From: Guillardia theta CCMP2712
Lineage: Eukaryota > Protista > Cryptophyta
DNA: 64,000 nt
Reading direction: 5' to 3'
Assembly (NCBI RefSeq): GCF_000315625.1
Contig: NW_005434666.1
Span: 1,011,806-1,075,805 of the forward strand
The notes under the pieces were generated by a model. The model did not search any database, was not told where the DNA came from, and saw only the letters and a program-made list of their open reading frames with translations. Each line of letters starts with the position of its first letter. Positions within the stretch are counted from its first letter, which is position 1. This document shows positions 1,666 through 64,000 of the stretch, in pieces. Both the position numbers and the translations under genes were made by a program.

Positions 1666-4600
1666 CTCCTCCTCCTCCTCCTCCTCCTCCTCCTCCTCCT
1701 CCTCCTCCTCCTACATCACCACCACCACCACCACCACCACTATCTGCTATCCAACGTGCCCTACCACTACTACCACCACAACCACCACCACCACTGCATG
1801 ACTTACAAGCGCCTCTTGCGCTCGGTTCTCTGCTTGCAGTGCAAGCGACTTTGCCTCTGCGCAGTTGTGAGGAGGAAATGAAGTGAAGAAAGGAAGTCAG
1901 CTAACCTGCTGCTGCGCTGCGAGCCTTCTCGACTTCCAAATTTGCGATGTCGGCAAGCTGATAAGACATTCAAAACCAAGGAGAGGACGAAAGGAAGAGA
2001 AAAAATGGGGCAGGGAACGAAAGTACAAAACGAGAAAAGATCACCTTGCGTGCTTCGCTCGCCGCCATGATCGCGGCTTGCTTGTCCTTGTTTGCTTGGC
2101 TTGCTACTTCCTGTAGCCTCAAGTGAGGAAGAGGAGAAAACAAGAACAGAGTGTAGGCGCAGTTGCAAGAACAAAGAAAGGGAGAAGGGAGTCAAGCAAG
2201 GACGATGATGAGCAAGAAGAGGGGATTGAAGAGGAACGAAACAAAGAAGACATGAAGAAGGAAGGAAGAGGATCTCACTTCAGCAGCGGCCTTGCTTGCT
2301 TCAGCAGCTTGACAAGTGATGATCAAGTTGTTTTTCTCATTCTCTGAAGGCCATGTAAAGTAAGAAAGCCTCGATGGACCCAGAACACAACAATTCAGGC
2401 GTTCAATATCAACATACAACAGTTCATGAATCGCATGTTTGGATAGCAGGTCAAATACCACGTGCCAAACAAGATGTATGAAAAAGGGCGCAAATTTGCA
2501 TCACAGACATACATCACAGCTGGCTTGCCTGTTCTTATCCGGTTCGAAATCTCCTCGTTCATCTTTGCCTCTGCAACCATCCGAGCATCATCTGCAAGAG
2601 AATCAATCTCCATTGCCGCATGGTTGAGAAACTCCTCCTCCTCCTCCTCCTCCTCCTCCTCTTCTTCCTCCTCCTCTCCTGCTCCCCATCTGCCCTTCTG
2701 CTCTCTCCCCTCCTTCTCTCCCTTCCTTCTCTTCCTTCCTCCTCTTTCCCTGGTCCGACCTGCAGCTCGAGCCAACTTCTCAGCTTCGCTGCACATCAGG
2801 AGTCAGGAAGCAAACGGCATTCTCTAGTCTTCACCATCTCGAGTCTTCAGCCCTCTTGCTCTCCTCTTCCGCCAACTTCCGGGCCTGCGGCACAATAGTG
2901 AAATGGGAGGGAAACGTCGAGCCTCTTCACTTTGGCTTCGGTCAAACACTGAAGAAGAGCTCGTTCTTTATCGTTCTCCGCAATCAGTCTAGCCGACTCT
3001 GCGATTTCCCCCCAAGTTAGAGAGCATGAATACACATTGCATGCAAAAAAATCAATGAGACATTACACGACAATCGAATGAATAGACAGCAGAATCATGA
3101 TTGATCAGTGGAGCATAGTCAAAGTTGGGAAGCTGATAGGAAACCTTAACTCAAGGGACCTGAAGAAACACAGCCAACAAGAAACACGCAAGGTTCTATC
3201 ACCAGCTAGCGAACGCAGTCCGTCGGCTTCTGCAGCTACCAGCTTCGACTGCGACTTACCATCAGCAAAGAAAAGCAGTCACCACGGAGAGAAGCCAGAC
3301 CTTTCTCTCTTTCTCAAGACATTCTTCAGCGTAGATTTCAGCTGCTTTCTGCAAGGAGAATCTCACGGTTTGTAATTCTGGATTATGGATAAGTACCTGA
3401 AGCTGTTGAGCTTGACGAGCCAGCTCTTCGAACTGTGCAAAGAAGTGCTAGTCAAGGAAGGAGAGCTACAGCGCTCCCTCCCTCCCTCCCTCCCTCCCTC
3501 CCTTCCTCCACCTCTGCATCCATCCATCCACCCATCTATCCATCCTTCCATTCCTCCCTCCCTCCCTCCCTCCCTCCCTCCCTCCCTCCCTCCCTCCCAC
3601 TTTTAGACCTGTATCTTCTGCTCTTTTGCCAGGTTCATCTCCTATTCTCACATGGTGAGTAGCGTCAATCCACACAAACTTGTTGTTCCTCACTTGCACT
3701 GCTTTTTCTGCTTGTTCGTTTGCCTACGTAGAGAGAAAATTCAACCTCAGAGTTCAAACATTTGATCATAATCACCATGGCTTTCTCAAGATTTGCGTGC
3801 TTGGCCATCTCCACAGCATTTCTGTCCTTTCACGTCAACATTTCATTTTTAAAGTATCAACACGACGAATGAAGGCTCTTCACGGCTGCTCAGATAAATA
3901 GTTCCAGAGTAGAACTCCTCGAAGTTTTACGTGTCAGACAGGCAACTTGCCTGCATTCTTCAGCAGACTTCAGAGCTCTTGCCTCGGCTTCTTCAGCCGC
4001 TGCTTGCGCAGCTTTGGCAGTTTTCTTGCAAAGAAATCAGCGCTCTTTCTTTCAACAAACGTAACATCACCTCCATCTCTTGTCTTTTCATGCATTCATT
4101 CTTGCAGAATCGGGTCAGATCTTCTCTTATTCTCACTCTTCCTTTGTCTTCACCTCGCAGTCTTTCTCTGCCATCCTTCTTGCCTGCAGAAAAAGTTACA
4201 AGGAGAACAAGGAGAGCGTGTGCTCTACCTTAGCTTCTGCTGTTGCCATCACCTCGCATCTGAGCCTTCCCCTTTCTGCGATCTCCTGCACAACGAAGCA
4301 ACCGTGACCATCAGGTGGACCCTACAGGCATTCTTGCTTGCTCACCTTCTCAGTCATAGCTTGGATTTTGTTACGCTCGGCAATCTCAGCCTTGATTTCT
4401 ACGTTGTTGAAACTAAGAAGGCAAGAGATTGATGAAATGAAAACAATCACCAGCTTGTTTCAGCTGATCGATGGCCTTGAACCAAACACGTCAACTTTCT
4501 AATCTTCATACTCAACTCTTCTGGTTCCTCACCTTTGCTGTTGCGACCTGTGCAGCCTCTGCATTCCTTTCAGCGATCATCTTTGCCTGCCATGTCGACA

Positions 4601-5650
4601 TCACAAGAATTCCGTCGCATCTCATCTCATAATCTTTTACTTGTTCGGCAAGGCTCTTGAGATCATCGGCCTCGAGCCTCAACGAACTCTCAAGCTGAGC
4701 TCTCTTCTCAGCCTCAGCTACCAGTAGCTTCATCTGCCATTTCGAAATGCATCAGCTCTGACTTGCCCTCCATCTTAGAGCGTCAGGGCAAACCTCCGCA
4801 ACTGTTCTTTCAGCCTCGGATCTCAGAGCTTCGGCAATGGCACGATCTTGATCGGCCTTAGTCCTGGAACGAGCACAAAGAACGTGAACCAACAAACGTT
4901 CCCAGTGATCATCTACTTCGCAGCAACAGCCTCATCACGGGCATCGCGCAGCGACCGAAGTTGTGAATCGCACTCAGCCTTCAACCTTAGAAGCTCTTGA
5001 GCATGGCTGCCATGGAACATCAGCGGCATTATATGGATGCAGTACATCCTGACCTCGCTTGAAGGGATCGAAGAGTGTCGTTGAGGTTTTGTACTTCTTT
5101 CGTCAACTTATCATTCTTGTCCTTCTCTGTCTCTAGATCCTTCTTGAGCTCGGAGATTTCTTGCTCAGTCTTCCTCCTTGCCTTGGAGGGTATCAGTGAA
5201 TCTTGCAAACTCATCCCGCCTTCACCTCGTTCTCGATCGCTCGGAGCAGGGAAGTTTTTTCCTCAGCACGCTCAAGATCATCCTGCAACTCCTCTGCCAG
5301 GTAGCCCAGAGTTTCGTTGGTCAGGAGGGACTCAAACTCTTCGTCCGCGTGCGATCTCGTCCGGACGTAAGTTGACCCATCTTGCTTCGACTCGATCAGA
5401 GTCAGCTCGCCAGGCTTCGTAGCGGAGGTAAGGATCCGATCGATCCTTCCTCCATCCCACACCACTGCCAGAGAAGAACAACCATCAGCAAGGACCGAAG
5501 GACACGTCTACCATCACCAGCGACATCTTGAGATCCCACTTCGAAGATGGTTCCGATGCCATGCTGTCTGAATGGGGTTGCCATCGAGACGCGCATGCCG
5601 ACTTTCGGCTGGACATCCTTGCCGATGAACTTTTCTTTCGCGCTCGACAT
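1..5650 (-). CDS. Multi-exon protein with an SH3/MIB-HERC2-like N-terminal head and a long coiled coil; paralog of 7376-11344; 3' end runs off the left edge of the window
   Basis: ATG at 5650 (MSSAKEKFIGKDVQPKVGMRVSMATPFRQHGIGTIFEV...VWDGGRIDRIL). It is followed by many short E/A/K/R-rich exons (LAEELQDDLERAEEKTSLLR; MKRAEAVAAAEAKARKI; AMQEKHEAEIEAFEAIQ) separated by GT-AG introns. No stop was identified before position 1. Confidence 0.8.
1578..1796. repeat. Compound microsatellite (CCT)n-(CT)n-(CCT)n-(CAC)n, intronic
   Basis: Directly visible tandem repeats inside an intron of the minus-strand coiled-coil gene. Confidence 0.95.
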
Positions 5651-6360
5651 CCTGTAACGTTATTTGTTAGCCTTTTCCTAACGGACCAGAACTAGCAAAC
5701 CTGGCTCAACAATGCTGGAATGTCGATGATCAGGCAAAAATACCTGTCAAAGGTGTCAGAGGGGAGAAACAGACTCGTCGCAAGGAAAGAAAATCACTTT
5801 CATTTCTTCTTTGCAATTGAATGCTATTCCGACCAACTATGTGAATCACCTAAAGCAAGTACACCTTCATTCTCTCCCTACTCTTCCGGGGTTACTCCTA
5901 CTCGGACTAGGAATCTATCAGCTCATGTCTATCAACTCAGTGTTTGTGTTGCATATCATCAATGATTCATGTTTACTCATGAATCTCTCCCGATATCCTC
6001 CAAAAATGCATCATTCAGCATGTCAGATTCCTCTGTGTCCTGTCACAAAGAGCACTGCAAATCCTACATCTCATTTTCAAAATCACTGCACAATATTCAT
6101 CTTTGCAAAAATAATTCGGAGCCGCCGAACTCCTGTCGAGGTGCATCTCAAGGAAATCAGTGATACCTGTGAAAACAAACTTGACTGAGAATTTCAAATA
6201 CTCGGAAGAGAATTCAAAAATGCCGAAATGTTCGTCGCTCCGACATCGGAGCGAAAACATTGACTCGCGTAAGCTCAAACTTCTTCTTTGAAATTCAAAT
6301 TTTGAGAAGAGAAAATGAAAACATTATGAGCCGGCTCGGAGTTGATCCGATAGAAATCCC

Positions 6361-7090
6361 GGCCTACCCCTACCCTACCCCATCGTCGAACCTCTCAAAA
6401 TTTCCTCTGGAATCCCCTCATCCCACCACTTACTTGTACCCTCAAAAGATCCAATTTCGTACCCCCACCCCCTCCTTCGACCCTGTGAATCCCACAAAAT
6501 GATCTTAGAGAGGATTGTGCTACTACCCCTTCAGTCAAGATACCCCACCTACTCTTTACTCCTGAAACTACCCTACTGAATAGGTGGGCTGACCCTTCGT
6601 TGGGACTCGAAAGGGCAGGGACACCGGTACGATTGATATGGCACCGTCACCAACCCCCCATATGGTACTGCAAGGTACCCACCTACTGGAGTTAAAACAC
6701 GTAGCACCCCCCGATGCGAAATGTTATTGCTATCACGGTACCCGGTGGTATTCCGATGCACCCCACGACTTTCCCGACACAAATGAAGGGGTACTACCTA
6801 TCACCTCTATGTGAAAAAGGCATGAATGAGGGGTAGTAGGGTCATCAGAGTACCCCCTCACTCCTCTCTCTATAGGATTCTTTCAGTACCGCCTCATCGG
6901 ACCTTGACTAGTTTGTTTTGACCGAGGGGAGGTAGGGTACTAAACTTCAGGGGTAGTTTCATCGGGGGACGGGTATACTGTATGTGATGACCCGTCTTTC
7001 AAGATGAAAGCGAGTGGAAATCAGGTGGTAGGGCACCCTTGAACGACAGGAGTCGGATCCTGTACCAGAGGGTAGGTGCGTTTGGAGGTG
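6361..7090. promoter_or_regulatory. Putative bidirectional promoter region rich in TACCC(C)/(G)GGGTA motifs
   Basis: Lies between two divergent ATGs (5650 on -, 7376 on +). Many TACCC copies on the left side give way to GGGTA copies on the right. Confidence 0.5.
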
Positions 7091-57184: not shown

Positions 57185-57739
57185 GCTGACACGCCAGATT
57201 GAGTTCTCGTACACTTTTCGAGCGGGATGTTCTATCAGAGTCCTTCTGTTTCTACCTCTCTGTCCCACCACTGACAGCGTTCAAATTCTATCTGTCAGAC
57301 CTCTTGCATGCTTCTACAAGACTGAAGCAGTTTGTACGTAATGGATCCCATCTCCTATGCGTTCAGCTGGAACAACACGATGTTTGACTAGGATCAATGT
57401 CCTCCCAACCAACTCATATCACACCAACTCATATCACACCATGTCTACTTGTGCTACCTATCTAGTATGTCCCCACTCTCCCTTGCACTTTCTGCTTCTG
57501 GGTTCCAAAACACTCAATCCTCTGTATTCGATCATCACAATCGCTTCGAATCTTCTTGCTTCTGCACCTTGACATGCATCTAGAATATCTCCTGATTTTT
57601 CGCATTTATGTCTGACTCACTCCCTCTCCTTCCTCACACATATCGTCTCCCTCCTCATCCTTCTCCTCCTCTCCTCCTCCTCGTGCAGCTGCGCTTACCG
57701 GCCGTCCCGTCGCCATCGCTCGTCGTTAACGCCACCCAG

Positions 57740-58170
57740 ACTACCCCCACCCTCTTCCCAGCTGCACACAAATGGGGTTGCAGGAGCAGAATGTGGGGTG
57801 GGTGAAAACAAGTGTGGGTGTTGGGAGCGTGGCTGGGGTGGGGGTGTATTATTTGTACCAACAGCCAATGGAAATTGGGGGGTATATGGAAATTTGGGGT
57901 GAAAAATTTGGGGTGGGGTAGATGACAAATAGTTGACCTAATAGGGTGGTATGTGATTTCCACCGTCCCACCCCCCAACACTGAGAATATAATGTTTTTA
58001 AAGGTAACTTTCAAGAGGGGGTGGGATGTTAGTGAATTGACGACATTGAGGGGTGGGTGGAAGGGTAACATTTTCGGGGGGGTAGTTTTCAGCAAGAGCT
58101 GATGGAAAATGGTAGGGTAGGTGGTAGGGACAGGGTGGTTTATGCTCAAGACGAGGGGTAGGGTGGCATG
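57740..58170. promoter_or_regulatory. GGGGT/GGGTA-rich putative bidirectional promoter between NAMPT and PIP5K
   Basis: Dense GGGGT(A/G) and GGTAGGG motifs in a head-to-head interval. Same motif family as 6361-7090, 40380-40480, 52395-52710 and 63580-63760. Confidence 0.45.
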
Positions 58171-58734
58171 GAGTGGTGAAGGGCAGGCAACAAGAAAATG
58201 CAGGGAGCCTAGGGGAGGAGGTGAAGGGAAACGAAGGAAGAGGAAGCGAAGGGGAGCGACGTGGAGAACGAGAAGATGTGAAGGGCAAGGAAAAGCTCGA
58301 GGAGGTAGAAAGATCTGAATAGGATGAGAGAGTGGAAGTACGAGGAGTGAAGACTGCTGTGTATTTGTGTCAGGGCATGAAGGCGGCGTAGTGGTTGAGA
58401 ATGGAGGCTTCTTTGTTGCGATGAAGACAAAATCATGTTCAGTCTAGTCCATCGAAACTGGTTAGAGGAAGGAAGTGGAACGAAGGAAATTTCGACAGGA
58501 CAGGTAGACGAATACTGCAAAACAAAATGGAACGACGATTCGGATGTAGGAAAGTTCAGTTGTGAAGTTGCTGAAAAATCTGTCTTATACAGGGAATCTT
58601 TCGGAGCTTTACCTCTTCACTTATTCTCGGTATACCGATAAGATTCAAGTGCTACCAAGAGAGGTGAAAGATAGGATGAATCAGTGAGTTGCTACTTGCC
58701 AGTACCCACCTGCAGTGTCAACATGGCTTGAGCG

Positions 58735-61015
58735 ATGAACCACACGACATTCTTTCGGAGGAGCCCGTTTGCTCCTGATGGAGACTCAAGTACAAGTAGG
58801 AACATCAGGAGCAGCCAGGGTGGCAGCGCTCCGCATGCCCCGCAAGATTCTTGGGCGCTGAATCCCTTCTCGCGAATACAGCAGTGGAAGGATGTCGTGC
58901 AAAACTCCTTGTTCGGCCCTACAGGTGAGAAGCGGTGGCCGGTGCGTCTAGGAGCTGACTCATGGGCTGTAAGACACCGACAAGGGGCCTGAGGGAGACG
59001 AGCATCCGAAGCCTGTTGAGCCCAGAGTAGCTGATCCAGCGGTGGTGTTGGACAACCACGAGGACGGTTCTCAGTTTGTTCGGAAGTCTCTGCAAGGCTT
59101 GCGCCGGGGTATCTTGTCCCAGGTTTTTGGAGAGTAGAAGGTTGAAGTTTGTGAAGTGACTTTCTCCGTCAGCTGGATGTAGTACAACATTCTTCGGATG
59201 ATCCGGCGAGTAGGGGGGATTTTGCTATTACCCTTGACATGTAAGGCCTTGTTTGACTTGTCCAGTCTCGTTTTGTCTCACGAGTGATGGTGTCTTTAGG
59301 AGTGGAGAGAGCGATGGCGGTGGTGAATCGAGTCATGGTTCTGCTGATGCGCAAGCGACTGCATCGGCTTCTCGTCCTGTACACTTTATCTCATACAGCC
59401 CGCTTGTTTTTGCGTGTCTAAGGCACGGGCTCAATATCTCGGAGGTGGAATACCGAGCGTCGTTCGAAGAGAACGTCTTTCGGGTCTTGAAACCTGCAAC
59501 ATCGAAGAGCGGCAGATGCTTTTTCATGACAAGAGATGAGAAGTTCATACTCAAATCCCTTGTAAGAGCAGAGGCTGATTTCATGTTGGACATGCTTTGT
59601 CACTATTTCGAGGTGATGGTTGTTTTTGGTTGAACTCGTGATGTGACAATATGCTCAGCATGTGACGAAGCATCCACAAACTTTGCTCCCAAGATACTGT
59701 GGCTTGTATGTGGTGAACGAAAAAGGAAGAGAGGTGATAATAAGTGTCGAAGCCAATGCTTTCAGTTCCGACTGCCCAGTACACGAGAGATACGATCTCA
59801 AGGTGAGAAATTAAAGCATCACTGCACTGTAAGATTCTCAAGAATGTTGTAGGGCTCAGTAGTTGGAAGGATGACAGCAAAGGAGGACAAGATCAAGGAC
59901 CCCGACGTAATTCTCAAGGATTTAGACCTTACACGCCAGCTTCCCCTGGGCCTGGCAAACAGATCTTTGCTGCTTCTGCAGTTGCGAGCAGATTGCCAGG
60001 TGAGATATCGAATTCGCATCATGTCTCCTGACAAGGCTGGCAGTTCTTGGAAAGTTTGGAGATTGTTGATTACAGTTTGCTACTTGGTGTGCATCATCCG
60101 AATCAGGAGCCACGGCAAGCAAGACAGTCTCTGGAAACCGAACTGCAAGACTCCTTGTTCATCTCTGACCACAGTGATACAAACGTCTCTAAAGCTGAAG
60201 CCTCGGCGGATGTGCCCCCGGATGCTGGACATGAATCTGACCACAGATATCGCCCGTTGTCGCTGTCGTCCGAGGACGGTGCCCCCCATGACTTTGAGAT
60301 CAGCAATCTGCGAAACATCAGCGTGTTGGACTCGGGGGACTTTGATTCTAAGATCACCTTCAATACAGACAAGGTATGTGAGCTCCGTGACAGGTTCTGG
60401 TATGGACTCACATTGTCGCACAGGTTGTAGTGATTCTAGTGGCAGTCGGGGACACCAAGTGCGCAGCTCTATGTAGGCAAGCAGTCGTTGCAGTCGAGAG
60501 CGCCTTGGAGACTGAGGAGAAGCTCAAGGGGCTGGAAGGAGTTGTGCTGAACCTCGACACTTGTACTCCGCATCTCATCACCTCTCTTCGAGCTTTCAAC
60601 GTCCCCTCCATCCTCTGCTTCAACGCCGGCAACGAGGTGGAGAGGATGATCGGAGCCCCGTCCCAACGGTGCCTGTGCGAATCCCTTACGAAGCTCGTGG
60701 CTCTCAAGTCAGGGGAAAAGGGAAACAGGAAAAGTTGGGCAGCGGGACCGTCGACTTCGGTACTGCGCAAGGACTGGAACGGGGTGGAAGGGACGGAGGG
60801 AGACGTGTTCTACTTTGGAATTGTGGATGTTCTGCAGCCATACACTCTGAAGAAGCAGCTGGAACATTCTCTCAAGTCGTTGGTTCAAGACAAGAAGAAG
60901 ATGACGATCGTTGAACCAGCGCTCTACTCCCAGCGCTTTCAGGTCTGCATCCCTTGTAGAAGATGTTGATGAGCTGATAGGTTGACAGGCGTACATCAGC
61001 AGCATCCTCATTTAA
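58735..61015 (+). CDS. Type I phosphatidylinositol-4-phosphate 5-kinase with a thioredoxin-fold domain inserted in the catalytic core
   Basis: PIPK motifs: YSPLVFACLR; SKSGRCFFMTRDEKFILKSL; RYDLKGS; ILKDLD; DCQFLESLEIVDYSLLLGVH; YFGIVDVLQPYTLKKQLEHSLK; TIVEPALYSQRF. A Trx-like insert lies at ~60300-60705. TAA at 61013-61015. Confidence 0.9.
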
Positions 61016-61175
61016 CACAGAGCAAGTCGTCAGCTACCTCAAGGTGCCTTTCCTTGAGGTCGGTCTGTTGCAGGAAGTTTTATTTTTTTCTCTTATGGAT
61101 TTCTATGAACAAGAACCGTTTTCATGCCAAGGTCTTGGTAGCTGCTGCAGCTGTCGTGTTTCTCTCCTTCCCACC

Positions 61176-62771
61176 TCACTGCTTTTGCAACATTTGTTCC
61201 TAGACATTCAACAAGATCAGAACAGAACCGGAGACAGACAATTCATATCCACCTGGACTTGCTTGTAGTGCAGAGGATACTTCCACATCAACTTGGGTGG
61301 AGGAGCAGCACGACGTGGGATTCGCTCGAATTTCTCTGGTTTCAACATTGCACGAAGTCCTGCAAGACGACAAATTAATTCAGGCGTGTGAAAATTTCAC
61401 ACCGCAGGTCATTCGAGAAGGTGAATATCGATTAAGCTCCATTACTAGTCACATCGACATACCTAGCCTGTTGTAGTAGGCGATGATGACCTTTCCCCCT
61501 GCTTCTTCGATGATTCGCTTTGCCTGCAGCAACCATTAGCCACTCCACATCTCCTACACGTCGGCAAACCTGGGCAGACGCGTCGGAAACTTCTATCTGA
61601 AGGGGTCGGTCGATCTTGGTCCTGAGCGCAGGCAGAATGAGAAGAGTAGGATAGCAAGAGGGCATGCACGAACAGTTCTTTCCCCTTAGCAAGGAGTTTG
61701 ATCCCTTTCTTGATGTTGCTTCCAACGCAACCGGTGTCACGCAACACCTAACAGCACCTGTGACAAGTCCAACCCTGCACAGTCCAACAAGACCTTCATG
61801 TTGATCAACTTGGAGGAGTCGATTCTTCCCTGCTGGATCCAAGACCAGAGGCGATCGCTGCAGTGGCATCGCAATGACCGCTGGGAGACGGAGCACAACA
61901 ACTACTTCCACCCTCACTCTCACTACCACTTACATGTTCAGCCCCTCCAGAAGGGAAATGTAAGCATGCACGTTCTTGTGACCGAATTTCGGGAGTTTCT
62001 CTGCCAAGGCATCAGGGCCCGCGCAGCTCAGGTGTCACTCTCACTCATCAAGGGAGTCTGCCCTCCTTCGAAGCCCAGGAGCCCATGGTTGCCAGCGCGT
62101 GCGCGCTACGAGTTTACATCGTCTCAGACAGCACAAGAGAGGAACATGTCGGCTCCAACCTGTCCCTTGTGGCCCCTGCCCGAAGTCTTTCCAAGGCCGC
62201 TTCCCGTTCCCCTGAGTGCGGCCGTGAGCTTCAGCATGTCACGGCATGTCTGACCTTCCCAGACGCTTCTTGCTGGGGCGAGCACCGGGGTTGTCGCGGA
62301 GGTCAGAAAGAGTGACCTAGTCAAGATTGTGATCGCGCTGACCGCACACGGAGACCCAACCTGCGAGCTGAACGATCGCTCCTGCACGTTCTTCAACAGA
62401 TTCCGATCCATGAGTTGCGAAGCAGCAAGGGGGAGCGAAGGGAAACTTGCACGACCTGGAGTGTCAAGACAGGGTTCGTATGAGATCGCAACGTCAAAGT
62501 GATTGAGAGGTCAAAATGTACCAGAAGTCAGCGACCTGCAAAGGCACCACGGAATTACAAGAAGTTTTGTCAAGATGTTACAGTCAACAACCTGACGATG
62601 TTGACGTTGTTGTTGATCGCCGATCTCTCCCACTTCATGAAACCTACCCAGAGCTCGAATCAGGCGATACGAGAAAACGAGAAATTTCAAGGAAGCATGG
62701 GGGCTGCTTTCATAGGAACAGGCAAAGTGCGTACCGAATGTAGGACCAGCAACAGATCGCAGACATAACAT
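61176..62771 (-). CDS. MRPL15: Mitochondrial ribosomal protein uL15; start uncertain
   Basis: LSDLRDNPGA; RGTGSGLGKTSGRGHKGQ; GFEGGQTP; GRIDSSKLINMK; GIKLLAKG; LQIEVSDAS; IIEEAGGKV; GLRAMLKPEKF..PPPK. Presequence-like N-terminus. Confidence 0.85.
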
Positions 62772-63103
62772 CTTGGATGATCTTATGTCAAAGTGTCAGA
62801 GAAAAGAATACATATTACATGCACAGCTCCCATTAACAGAAGCCTTCCTGGCTGATCCACCTAGGTTTCCCCCACTGCTTATCCCCATGAACATGTCTTT
62901 TCAAGGATAAACAATGTTGTAGATGCTGCTAGTACTCCCTTGATGTTGTTTCCTGCTTTTCTCCACTCTCCTCTACCTCTCCACTCATTCCCCCTCTCCC
63001 CCCTTCACGGTTCTTCGAATATCTCAGATAGTTCACAACTTCGAGGCTTGCAATGACAGCATTGTACACCTCTCTGTCCTCCTCATCCTAGTCCTTCTGC
63101 TGA

Positions 63104-63421
<318 letters not shown>

Positions 63422-64000
63422 TGACAAGCGCCTGCATGCTTCTAGATCACTCAACTCTTCCTCAGTATCTGTTGGAACCGTTACAACAGAGGCTAGACGT
63501 TACAAAAAGGAAAACGGTTACTCGGGTCGCAACGGACCGTTTCATCTCGTCCGAGATTACCCCTTCATTCGACTTGTGTTTTCGGGGTGGTTGGAAAAGT
63601 ACCGGTAATAAAGGGGTGGGGGTCATTGAAATGAATCTTTTCTTAGAGATCGGTAGGGGTAATCAAAGGGGAAAGGTAGGGTTCAGAGAAGACTGGTAGG
63701 GTCCTATGGCCGAAGGTAGGGTTTGTGCCGAGGGGTGTGAATACGGGGGGGTGGTAGAGCTGACGCGGCTCATGGTGACGTGAGGAAAGGAAAGGAAAGG
63801 AAGCGCAAGAGAAGAGATGAGGGAATGAGGAGAAGAGAACAAACAAGAAGATTCAATGGCGAGAACAAGCTTCAATGAGAAGGAGAGAAGGACAGGGTAG
63901 ACACGAACAGCTGAGGAGGACGGGGGGAAGGAAGGAAGGCGATAGATAAACCAGAGAGATAAGCAAAGTAACGAGAAAAGCATACAAGGAGAGAGCTGAG

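Follow-up and report, generated by a model that had tools for sequence, protein, structure and literature searches.

A predicted thioredoxin-like domain with a CxxxC cysteine pair in the insert of a type-I-like phosphatidylinositol phosphate kinase of Guillardia theta

In the current study, we analyzed a 64,000-nucleotide stretch of the Guillardia theta CCMP2712 genome (contig NW_005434666.1, positions 1,011,806 to 1,075,805 of the forward strand; referred to here as the window), which carries, at its positions 58735-61015, a gene for a phosphatidylinositol phosphate kinase (PIPK) of the PIP5K family. The catalytic core of this kinase is interrupted by an insert, and our sequence comparisons and structure models indicate with high confidence that the insert holds a complete, albeit diverged, domain of the thioredoxin family (approximately residues 422-545). 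Residue numbers are those of the 628-residue product, and the features on which the argument depends are as follows.

58735-61015, plus strand: whole coding sequence of the PIP5K gene; nine exons including the stop codon, 628-residue product (supported by the exon joints seen in transcript contigs X1 and X2, by the match to P0066 and by PF01504)
58735-58924, 58974-59122, 59173-59240, 59300-59612, 59659-59802, 59853-59999, 60044-60373, 60424-60942 and 60989-61015, plus strand: the nine exons
60068-60094, plus strand: DYSLLLGVH (residues 346-354), motif of the catalytic loop and final core element ahead of the insert; aligns to MDYSLLVGIH of zebrafish PIP5K1A
60095-60295, plus strand: linker on the N side of the insert (residues 355-421), of low complexity and rapidly evolving; 55% identity and a ratio of nonsynonymous to synonymous substitution rates (dN/dS) of 0.25 against the Hanusia-like cDNA L007; unaligned to solved PIP5K
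60296-60373, plus strand: predicted beta1-alpha1 part (residues 422-447) that opens the thioredoxin-like domain and holds the DFDxKITFN motif; strand and helix in the model of relative P0002:17-148, motif conserved in L002, P0007, P0019 and P0023
60374-60423, plus strand: 50-nt phase-0 intron within the thioredoxin-like domain; GT..AG, joint 60371/60422 (cut +2), seen in both X1 and X2
60424-60708, plus strand: predicted domain core (beta2-alpha2-beta3-alpha3-beta4-beta5-alpha4, residues 448-542); from the AlphaFold2 model, Foldseek, sequence and profile matches in the PDB, and a dN/dS of 0.059
60460-60474, plus strand: C-A-A-L-C pair (Cys460 and Cys464) in the first two turns of predicted helix alpha2, at the thioredoxin CGPC position; HMMER aligns the pair with that of M. 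tuberculosis TrxC across a gap of one residue
60604-60606, plus strand: Pro508, equivalent by alignment of the thioredoxin cis-proline (N-V-P-S against G-I-P-T); aligned to the IPT proline of thioredoxins
60709-60810, plus strand: C-side linker (residues 543-576), with the family-conserved AAGPS..LRKDWNGVEG; invariant columns in the family alignment, dN/dS 0.04 over the first 22 codons
60811-60837, plus strand: YFGIVDVLQ (residues 577-585), where the core restarts; contains the Asp of the IID motif, which binds Mg; aligns to FIGIIDILQ of zebrafish PIP5K1A
60850-60876, plus strand: activation (specificity) loop KKQLEHSLK, with Glu594 at 60862-60864; aligns to KKLEHSWK of type I PIP5K1A

Across positions 58450-61500, all eight introns were found to be spliced out at GT..AG borders in transcript contigs X1 and X2, which come from two studies, and the unspliced form is present in the DNA-type run X15. 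All nine exon translations are identical, and in the same order, to P0066 (UniRef A0A7S4UE85), a 628-residue open reading frame (ORF) from a G. theta MMETSP transcript; this public natural ORF, being equal to the window exons, served as the query for the whole-protein analyses. Its UniProt entry is unreviewed and is named only "PIPK domain-containing protein," and the full 628-residue product is on record solely as this transcriptome ORF. The NCBI reference model, EKX52736.1 (GUITHDRAFT_51515), is a 98-residue partial that covers only the start of the PIP5K domain, and the thioredoxin-like feature therefore lies entirely outside the reference annotation. Exon 7 ends at 60373 (...ITFNTDK), and exon 8, opening VVVILVAVGDTKCAALCRQ, runs from 60424; the intron between them, if retained, yields a stop codon, and the exon bearing the insert is retained in the mRNA (X1 and X2). 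An intron sits at the same position in relative L002, and relative L001/P0002 has none at the equivalent junction. In a GC-rich relative (L003, positions 3200-6400; ENA ERZ10646630 contig_21543), a second intron splits the domain after ...LLNTSL and before CNLPSILCF, and simple repeats, (CA)n among them, occur in the introns of this ortholog. We also considered whether a thioredoxin exon had recently been shuffled into the gene; this finds no support, as the borders of the domain and of the exons differ and the only intron sits inside the domain. The raw RNA-seq run X22 contributed about 100 reads over the region, mostly from the neighboring gene, which is too few for an expression level or for minor splice forms. 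We looked in the exon 1 sequence for an N-terminal hydrophobic signal and found none; the kinase is therefore probably cytosolic.

The PF01504 (PIP5K) profile matches four of the window exons, at 27-52 bits each against a cutoff of 27, and for the Hanusia ortholog P0017 the same profile gives 237 bits over its positions 13-288. Among solved structures, the best match is zebrafish PIP5K1A (E value [E] of 1e-37), with residues 163-363 and 575-626 as the aligned blocks. All of the core motifs are present in this alignment: the SKSG G-loop, the ATP-binding Lys (ILK), DLKGS, the catalytic Asp of DYSLL, and the Mg-binding Asp of IVD. The kinase also scores higher against type I chains (133 bits) than against type II chains (120 bits). 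These alignments suggest that the gene encodes a type-I-like PIP kinase that is apparently catalytically intact. The activation-loop Glu reportedly sets specificity for phosphatidylinositol 4-phosphate (PI4P) 5-kinase (type I) activity, its place being taken by Ala in type II enzymes (Kunz et al. 2002). The genome of G. theta, searched over 87.1 Mb in 669 contigs for both the module and PIPK loci, contains about eight of the latter, and the thioredoxin-like module is found at only one of these, i.e., it is single copy. The other seven or so PIPK-family loci lie on contigs C113, C12, C34, C24, C9, C107 and C66, with open frames of 1339 residues on C12 and of 710 residues on C34, and none of them carries the module.

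Type I PIP5K1A (zebrafish and human; PDB 4TZ7, 5E3S and 6CMW) shares with the Guillardia kinase both the core motifs and the type I activation-loop Glu, and in the zebrafish enzyme an insert is found at the same place, after beta10 (PMC4570271). However, that insert is only about 50 residues long (54 in our alignment), highly divergent, and disordered in the crystal (PMC4570271), whereas the Guillardia insert spans 211 residues (364-574) and holds a predicted folded domain. The Guillardia kinase also differs from PIP5K1A in having no long N- or C-terminal extension, and from the plant PIP5K matches, which carry MORN repeats (PF02493), in having none. An earlier, sequence-only reading of this DNA had placed the insert between DYSLLLGVH and YFGIVDVLQ, at the variable insert of PIP kinases, and the zebrafish alignment bears this out. 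That reading had also proposed a splice within the insert, now confirmed by contigs X1 and X2, by the intronless L001/P0002 junction and by the exact match to P0066; its concern that the insert might be removed by splicing is answered by the retention of the exon in the same transcript contigs. Its use of the Glu in KQLEHSLK as a type I mark fits the PIP5K1A alignment (KKLEHSWK against KKQLEHSLK).

Several lines of sequence evidence relate the insert to thioredoxins. When the 95-residue exon part was compared with the PDB by phmmer, 34 matches were returned at E<=10, nearly all of them thioredoxins (best E, 0.0045); in the alignments, Cys460 and Cys464 (codons 60460-60462 and 60472-60474) stand opposite both cysteines of CGPC across a one-residue gap, and NVPS stands opposite the cis-Pro loop. 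A profile built from the family matched 43 PDB sequences at E<=1, with a best E of 0.0013, and 42 of the 43 belong to thioredoxins. The same profile, searched against 1.84 billion representative proteins, found 11 at E<=0.001; eight of these are family members or fragments, and the remaining three, at E 2.5-6.4e-4, are bona fide multi-thioredoxin proteins. A distant ortholog, P0007 (a 460-residue partial PIP5K that is 37% identical in the module and 39% identical over a 356-residue BLASTP alignment), matches positions 6-101 of the 103-position Pfam thioredoxin profile (PF00085) with an E of 7.9e-5 and 23.1 bits, against a gathering cutoff of 23.5. Alignment of the family to a small thioredoxin alignment by hhalign gave a probability of 94.5%, and in a language-model atlas the module lies nearest to thioredoxin clusters.

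Structure prediction points in the same direction. The window exon part was modeled with AlphaFold2 from an 11-row alignment that contained no thioredoxins, and the model (mean predicted local distance difference test score [pLDDT], 71.8) has the order beta-alpha-beta-alpha-beta-beta-alpha, i.e., beta2 to alpha4. All of its best 50 Foldseek matches are thioredoxins, with template modeling scores of 0.61-0.76 and root mean square deviations of about 2.0-3.5 A. The relative P0002, whose contig has no internal intron, could be folded over the whole domain (P0002:17-148); this model displays the full classical beta1-alpha1-beta2-alpha2-beta3-alpha3-beta4-beta5-alpha4 topology (pLDDT, 72.1), and VIA-align, which is independent of Foldseek, found its best 50 matches to be without exception thioredoxins or thioredoxin-like (Z, 10.8-13.6). 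Given that the sequence profile, profile-profile comparison, structure models and structural aligners agree, we regard both the predicted fold and the distant kinship to thioredoxins as secure, with high confidence. The insert thus resembles classical thioredoxins (PF00085) in its full predicted topology, in a Cys pair at the start of alpha2, in the cis-Pro loop and in the ..G-x-E-..-G-A.. strand pair; it differs from them in carrying CxxxC rather than WCGPC, in scoring below the Pfam cutoff, and in being nested in a loop of another domain. Because the fold and the cis-Pro loop are present, the sequence score is borderline and CxxC is absent, we refer to it as a diverged thioredoxin-like domain. 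As a separate observation, the sequences that match the module best, among them an ancestral thioredoxin, are of the bacterial type (M. tuberculosis TrxC) and the chloroplast m type (Trx m of spinach and of Chlamydomonas) and not of the cytosolic h type, which may be a weak hint that the inserted domain came from an organellar or bacterial kind of thioredoxin.

The module is under strong purifying selection. When dN/dS was computed exon by exon against L007, the 121 codons of the thioredoxin-like module gave 0.059 (90% amino acid identity), compared with 0.025 for the kinase core (95% identity) and 0.253 for the N-side linker (55% identity), with dS at about 1.1 in all three regions and hence near saturation. 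Relatives of the module come from Hanusia phi (P0068/P0017), a JGI metatranscriptome (P0002), Logan assemblies (P0003 and P0007) and ENA metagenome contigs (L003-L005, together with fragments), so that it is known from only a handful of cryptophyte-like sequences. Two further models, P0019 and P0023, are truncated directly after the DFDxKITFN motif, and in a related PIP5K of Rhodomonas abbreviata (P0027), the transcript stops ahead of the module. A word search with the full-length protein, restricted to the module region, recovered the Hanusia cluster alone; with full-length orthologs only from that cluster, the evidence for conservation outside these two algae comes from fragments and from one 460-residue partial model. 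Both Cys460 and Cys464 are kept in all seven family sequences that cover the site, in the form of CAALC, CAGLC or CMSFC, and the CxxxC spacing is the same in all seven, as is a G-D two to three residues ahead of the pair. Asn506 and Pro508 are kept in 10 of 10 sequences, as is the F-x-x-G-x-E-x-x-R-x-x-G strand pair. The other cysteines are more variable: Cys494 is found in 8 of 10 and Cys512 in 9 of 11, while Cys530 and Cys532 occur in only two of seven (Guillardia and Hanusia). His497 is kept in 7 of 10 and is replaced by Leu in the L003 ortholog. On the thioredoxin side, then, the sequence-only reading has held up well: the thioredoxin order of elements that it recognized exceeds chance (phmmer matches in the PDB were almost only thioredoxins), its C-A-A-L-C pair in place of CxxC lies exactly at 60460-60474 with CxxxC spacing, the insert does model as a thioredoxin fold by both AlphaFold2 and the two structural aligners, and the cysteines whose conservation it had asked about are kept in every ortholog that covers them.

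Several points weigh against a thiol switch built into this domain. A Pfam scan of the window exons, P0002 and the Hanusia ortholog P0017 gave no thioredoxin-clan match even at E<=10, and confidence in the structure models is moderate (pLDDT of about 72). The active site reads K-C-A-A-L-C and not W-C-G-P-C, and several features of the classical catalytic site have gone: the residue ahead of the first Cys is Lys or Gln instead of Trp, Gly-Pro is missing, and the buried Asp (Asp26 in E. coli thioredoxin) has given way to Ala. Conservation of the Cys pair is drawn from only seven sequences, including those of the closely related Guillardia and Hanusia. Moreover, a disulfide between helical cysteines at positions i and i+4 is strained.

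With these points in mind, the reading that we favor, at somewhat short of even confidence, is that the module acts as a built-in thiol switch rather than as a general disulfide reductase. Both cysteines at the active-site position and the cis-Pro loop are strictly kept while other cysteines drift, which argues that this surface is used. The catalytic set is incomplete (no Trp, Gly-Pro or buried Asp, and one extra residue), and for this reason an ordinary reductase driven by thioredoxin reductase would not be expected. In the reducing cytosol, Cys460 and Cys464 would both be thiols, on the same face of helix alpha2. Oxidation would then link or modify the pair, and given the i/i+4 placement of the cysteines, a link would call for local unwinding of alpha2, which in turn would reshape the surface beside the cis-Pro loop. 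The module has a fast-evolving linker on one side and a short conserved linker on the other, and lies after the catalytic loop and ahead of the Mg-binding strand, which is itself followed by the activation loop. Tethered in this way beside the activation loop, the reshaped module could alter kinase activity, membrane binding or partner binding, and synthesis of phosphatidylinositol 4,5-bisphosphate [PI(4,5)P2] would thereby be tied to redox state, a coupling that the sequence-only reading had likewise put forward as a possibility for a redox- or metal-sensing module. A docking prediction of the module against the kinase core, the latter supplied as two split chains, returned a score of 0.00, which counts neither for nor against docking. 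That a CxxxC motif can be functional in a thioredoxin fold has a precedent in the Sco proteins (PMC6307045).

One alternative is that the module is a redox-inert scaffold, i.e., a degenerate thioredoxin fold kept for docking or spacing, which recruits a partner or sets localization and in which the cysteines are retained for packing of alpha2; phosducin, DIM1/U5-15kD, the thioredoxin-like domain of Grx3/PICOT and axonemal thioredoxin-like proteins would be comparable cases. This would account for the loss of the Trp, the Gly-Pro and the buried Asp and for the changed Cys spacing, as well as for the window sequence having no Pfam thioredoxin match, and the best 50 structural matches do include noncatalytic thioredoxin-like proteins (axonemal 8glv_DC, TXNL2, U5-15kD, phosducin-like and the thioredoxin-like domain of Grx3). 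It is harder to reconcile with the invariance of precisely the two active-site-position cysteines, down to 37% module identity, while Cys494, Cys512, Cys530 and Cys532 vary, and with the equally invariant cis-Pro loop that flanks the active site; we regard it as possible but rather doubtful. An unlikely alternative is that the conserved pair serves as a metal site: CxxxC would hold Cu(I), Zn or an Fe-S cluster, perhaps with the help of Cys494 and His497 from the nearby D-x-C-[ST]-P-H loop, and the kinase would respond to metal status. Sco thioredoxin folds bind copper through CxxxC and a distal His (PMC6307045, PMC3971200), and Cys494 and His497 are mostly conserved and, by homology to thioredoxin residues 60-65, would be placed on the active-site side of the sheet. 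However, these candidate third and fourth ligands vary, in that P0002 has Ser, and P0010, P0011 and P0013 have Gln or Leu where the His would be, and the likeness to Sco1/SenC (PF02630) ends with the CxxxC at the active-site position of a thioredoxin-type fold (PMC6307045, PMC3971200). Membership in that family was rejected: unlike Sco, the module has no His 84-87 residues past the motif (residues 544-551 of P0066), and it gives no PF02630 match at E<=10. Neither fold search has a Sco structure among its best 50 matches, the extra secondary-structure elements of Sco are missing from the module's fold matches, and the module has no membrane anchor.

An active oxidoreductase working in trans, that is, a disulfide reductase or oxidase serving the kinase's own cysteines or a bound substrate, would make use of the minimal thioredoxin active-site geometry that has been kept, with its two cysteines, its cis-Pro and the Gly in the last loop. 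We consider this very improbable: the CxxxC spacing and the lost Trp-Cys-Gly-Pro run contrary to classical turnover by thioredoxin reductase, and we found no precedent among PIP kinases in the literature searched. Finally, the resemblance might be due to chance or to an annotation artifact, such that the insert is no relative of thioredoxin or is absent from the mature protein. The weak E obtained with the window alone (0.0045) and the blank Pfam scan would allow for this, but against it stand the independent agreement of the sequence profile, the profile-profile comparison, two structure models and two structural aligners, the presence of the exon in transcripts, and the strong purifying selection on it. 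This last explanation is effectively refuted.

The amount of PI(4,5)P2, a lipid with a master role in membrane traffic, in the cytoskeleton and in signaling, is governed by PIP5Ks. Known control of these enzymes is exerted by small GTPases, phosphorylation, dimerization and membrane lipids, and the insert is regarded as a disordered, dispensable loop. Here, a predicted folded domain of a sensor type appears to be held by selection in that very loop. Returning to the thiol switch, if the CxxxC pair does switch the enzyme, it would connect redox or metal state directly to phosphoinositide signaling and would represent a natural case of domain-insertion allostery, which might be of use for engineering switchable lipid kinases. 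A sensor hardwired to a PIP kinase is known from the PIP5K-NCS EF-hand fusions of apicomplexans. These likewise join a sensor of a small signal to the kinase, but the sensor responds to Ca2+ and is fused terminally, rather than being a thioredoxin-like domain in the PIPK insert. Our literature search for a thioredoxin-type domain within a PIP kinase returned only comentions and no description of such an architecture, and none of the 50 PIP5K relatives listed bears a thioredoxin Pfam label. One speculative and quite tentative possibility is that the protein is a cytosolic PI4P 5-kinase gated by a thioredoxin-derived CxxxC thiol or metal switch, which would link redox state (e.g., photosynthetic or oxidative stress) to PI(4,5)P2, and that it forms part of a wider cryptophyte habit of placing small-signal sensors in kinase loops.

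The surroundings of the gene yielded some minor observations. A convergent neighbor, whose CT..AC introns fall at about 61199-61251 and at about 61359-61461, lies on the minus strand at 61050-61500 and beyond. The 3' untranslated region (UTR) of the PIP5K gene adjoins the 3' end of this neighbor, which explains why the transcript contigs span both genes. In the Hanusia-like contig (L007:2205-3053), the neighboring gene encodes a Ribosomal_L27A/L15 domain (PF00828; E, 1.5e-21), and the order of the PIP5K gene and its neighbor is common to Guillardia and the Hanusia-like alga. Upstream of the PIP5K start, positions 57600-58400 are of low complexity and strong strand skew (GC skew of +0.60 in 58000-58499), with ORFs that are Pro rich on one strand and Gly/Glu/Arg rich on the other; as contig X1 reaches about 265 nt upstream of 58450, part of this skewed stretch may be 5' UTR. 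At 63083-63454 on the minus strand, a 123-residue ORF encodes a long run of Arg-Ser dipeptides followed by an acidic E/D/Q-rich repeat, and it may be part of an exon of an SR-type protein or a plain low-complexity repeat.

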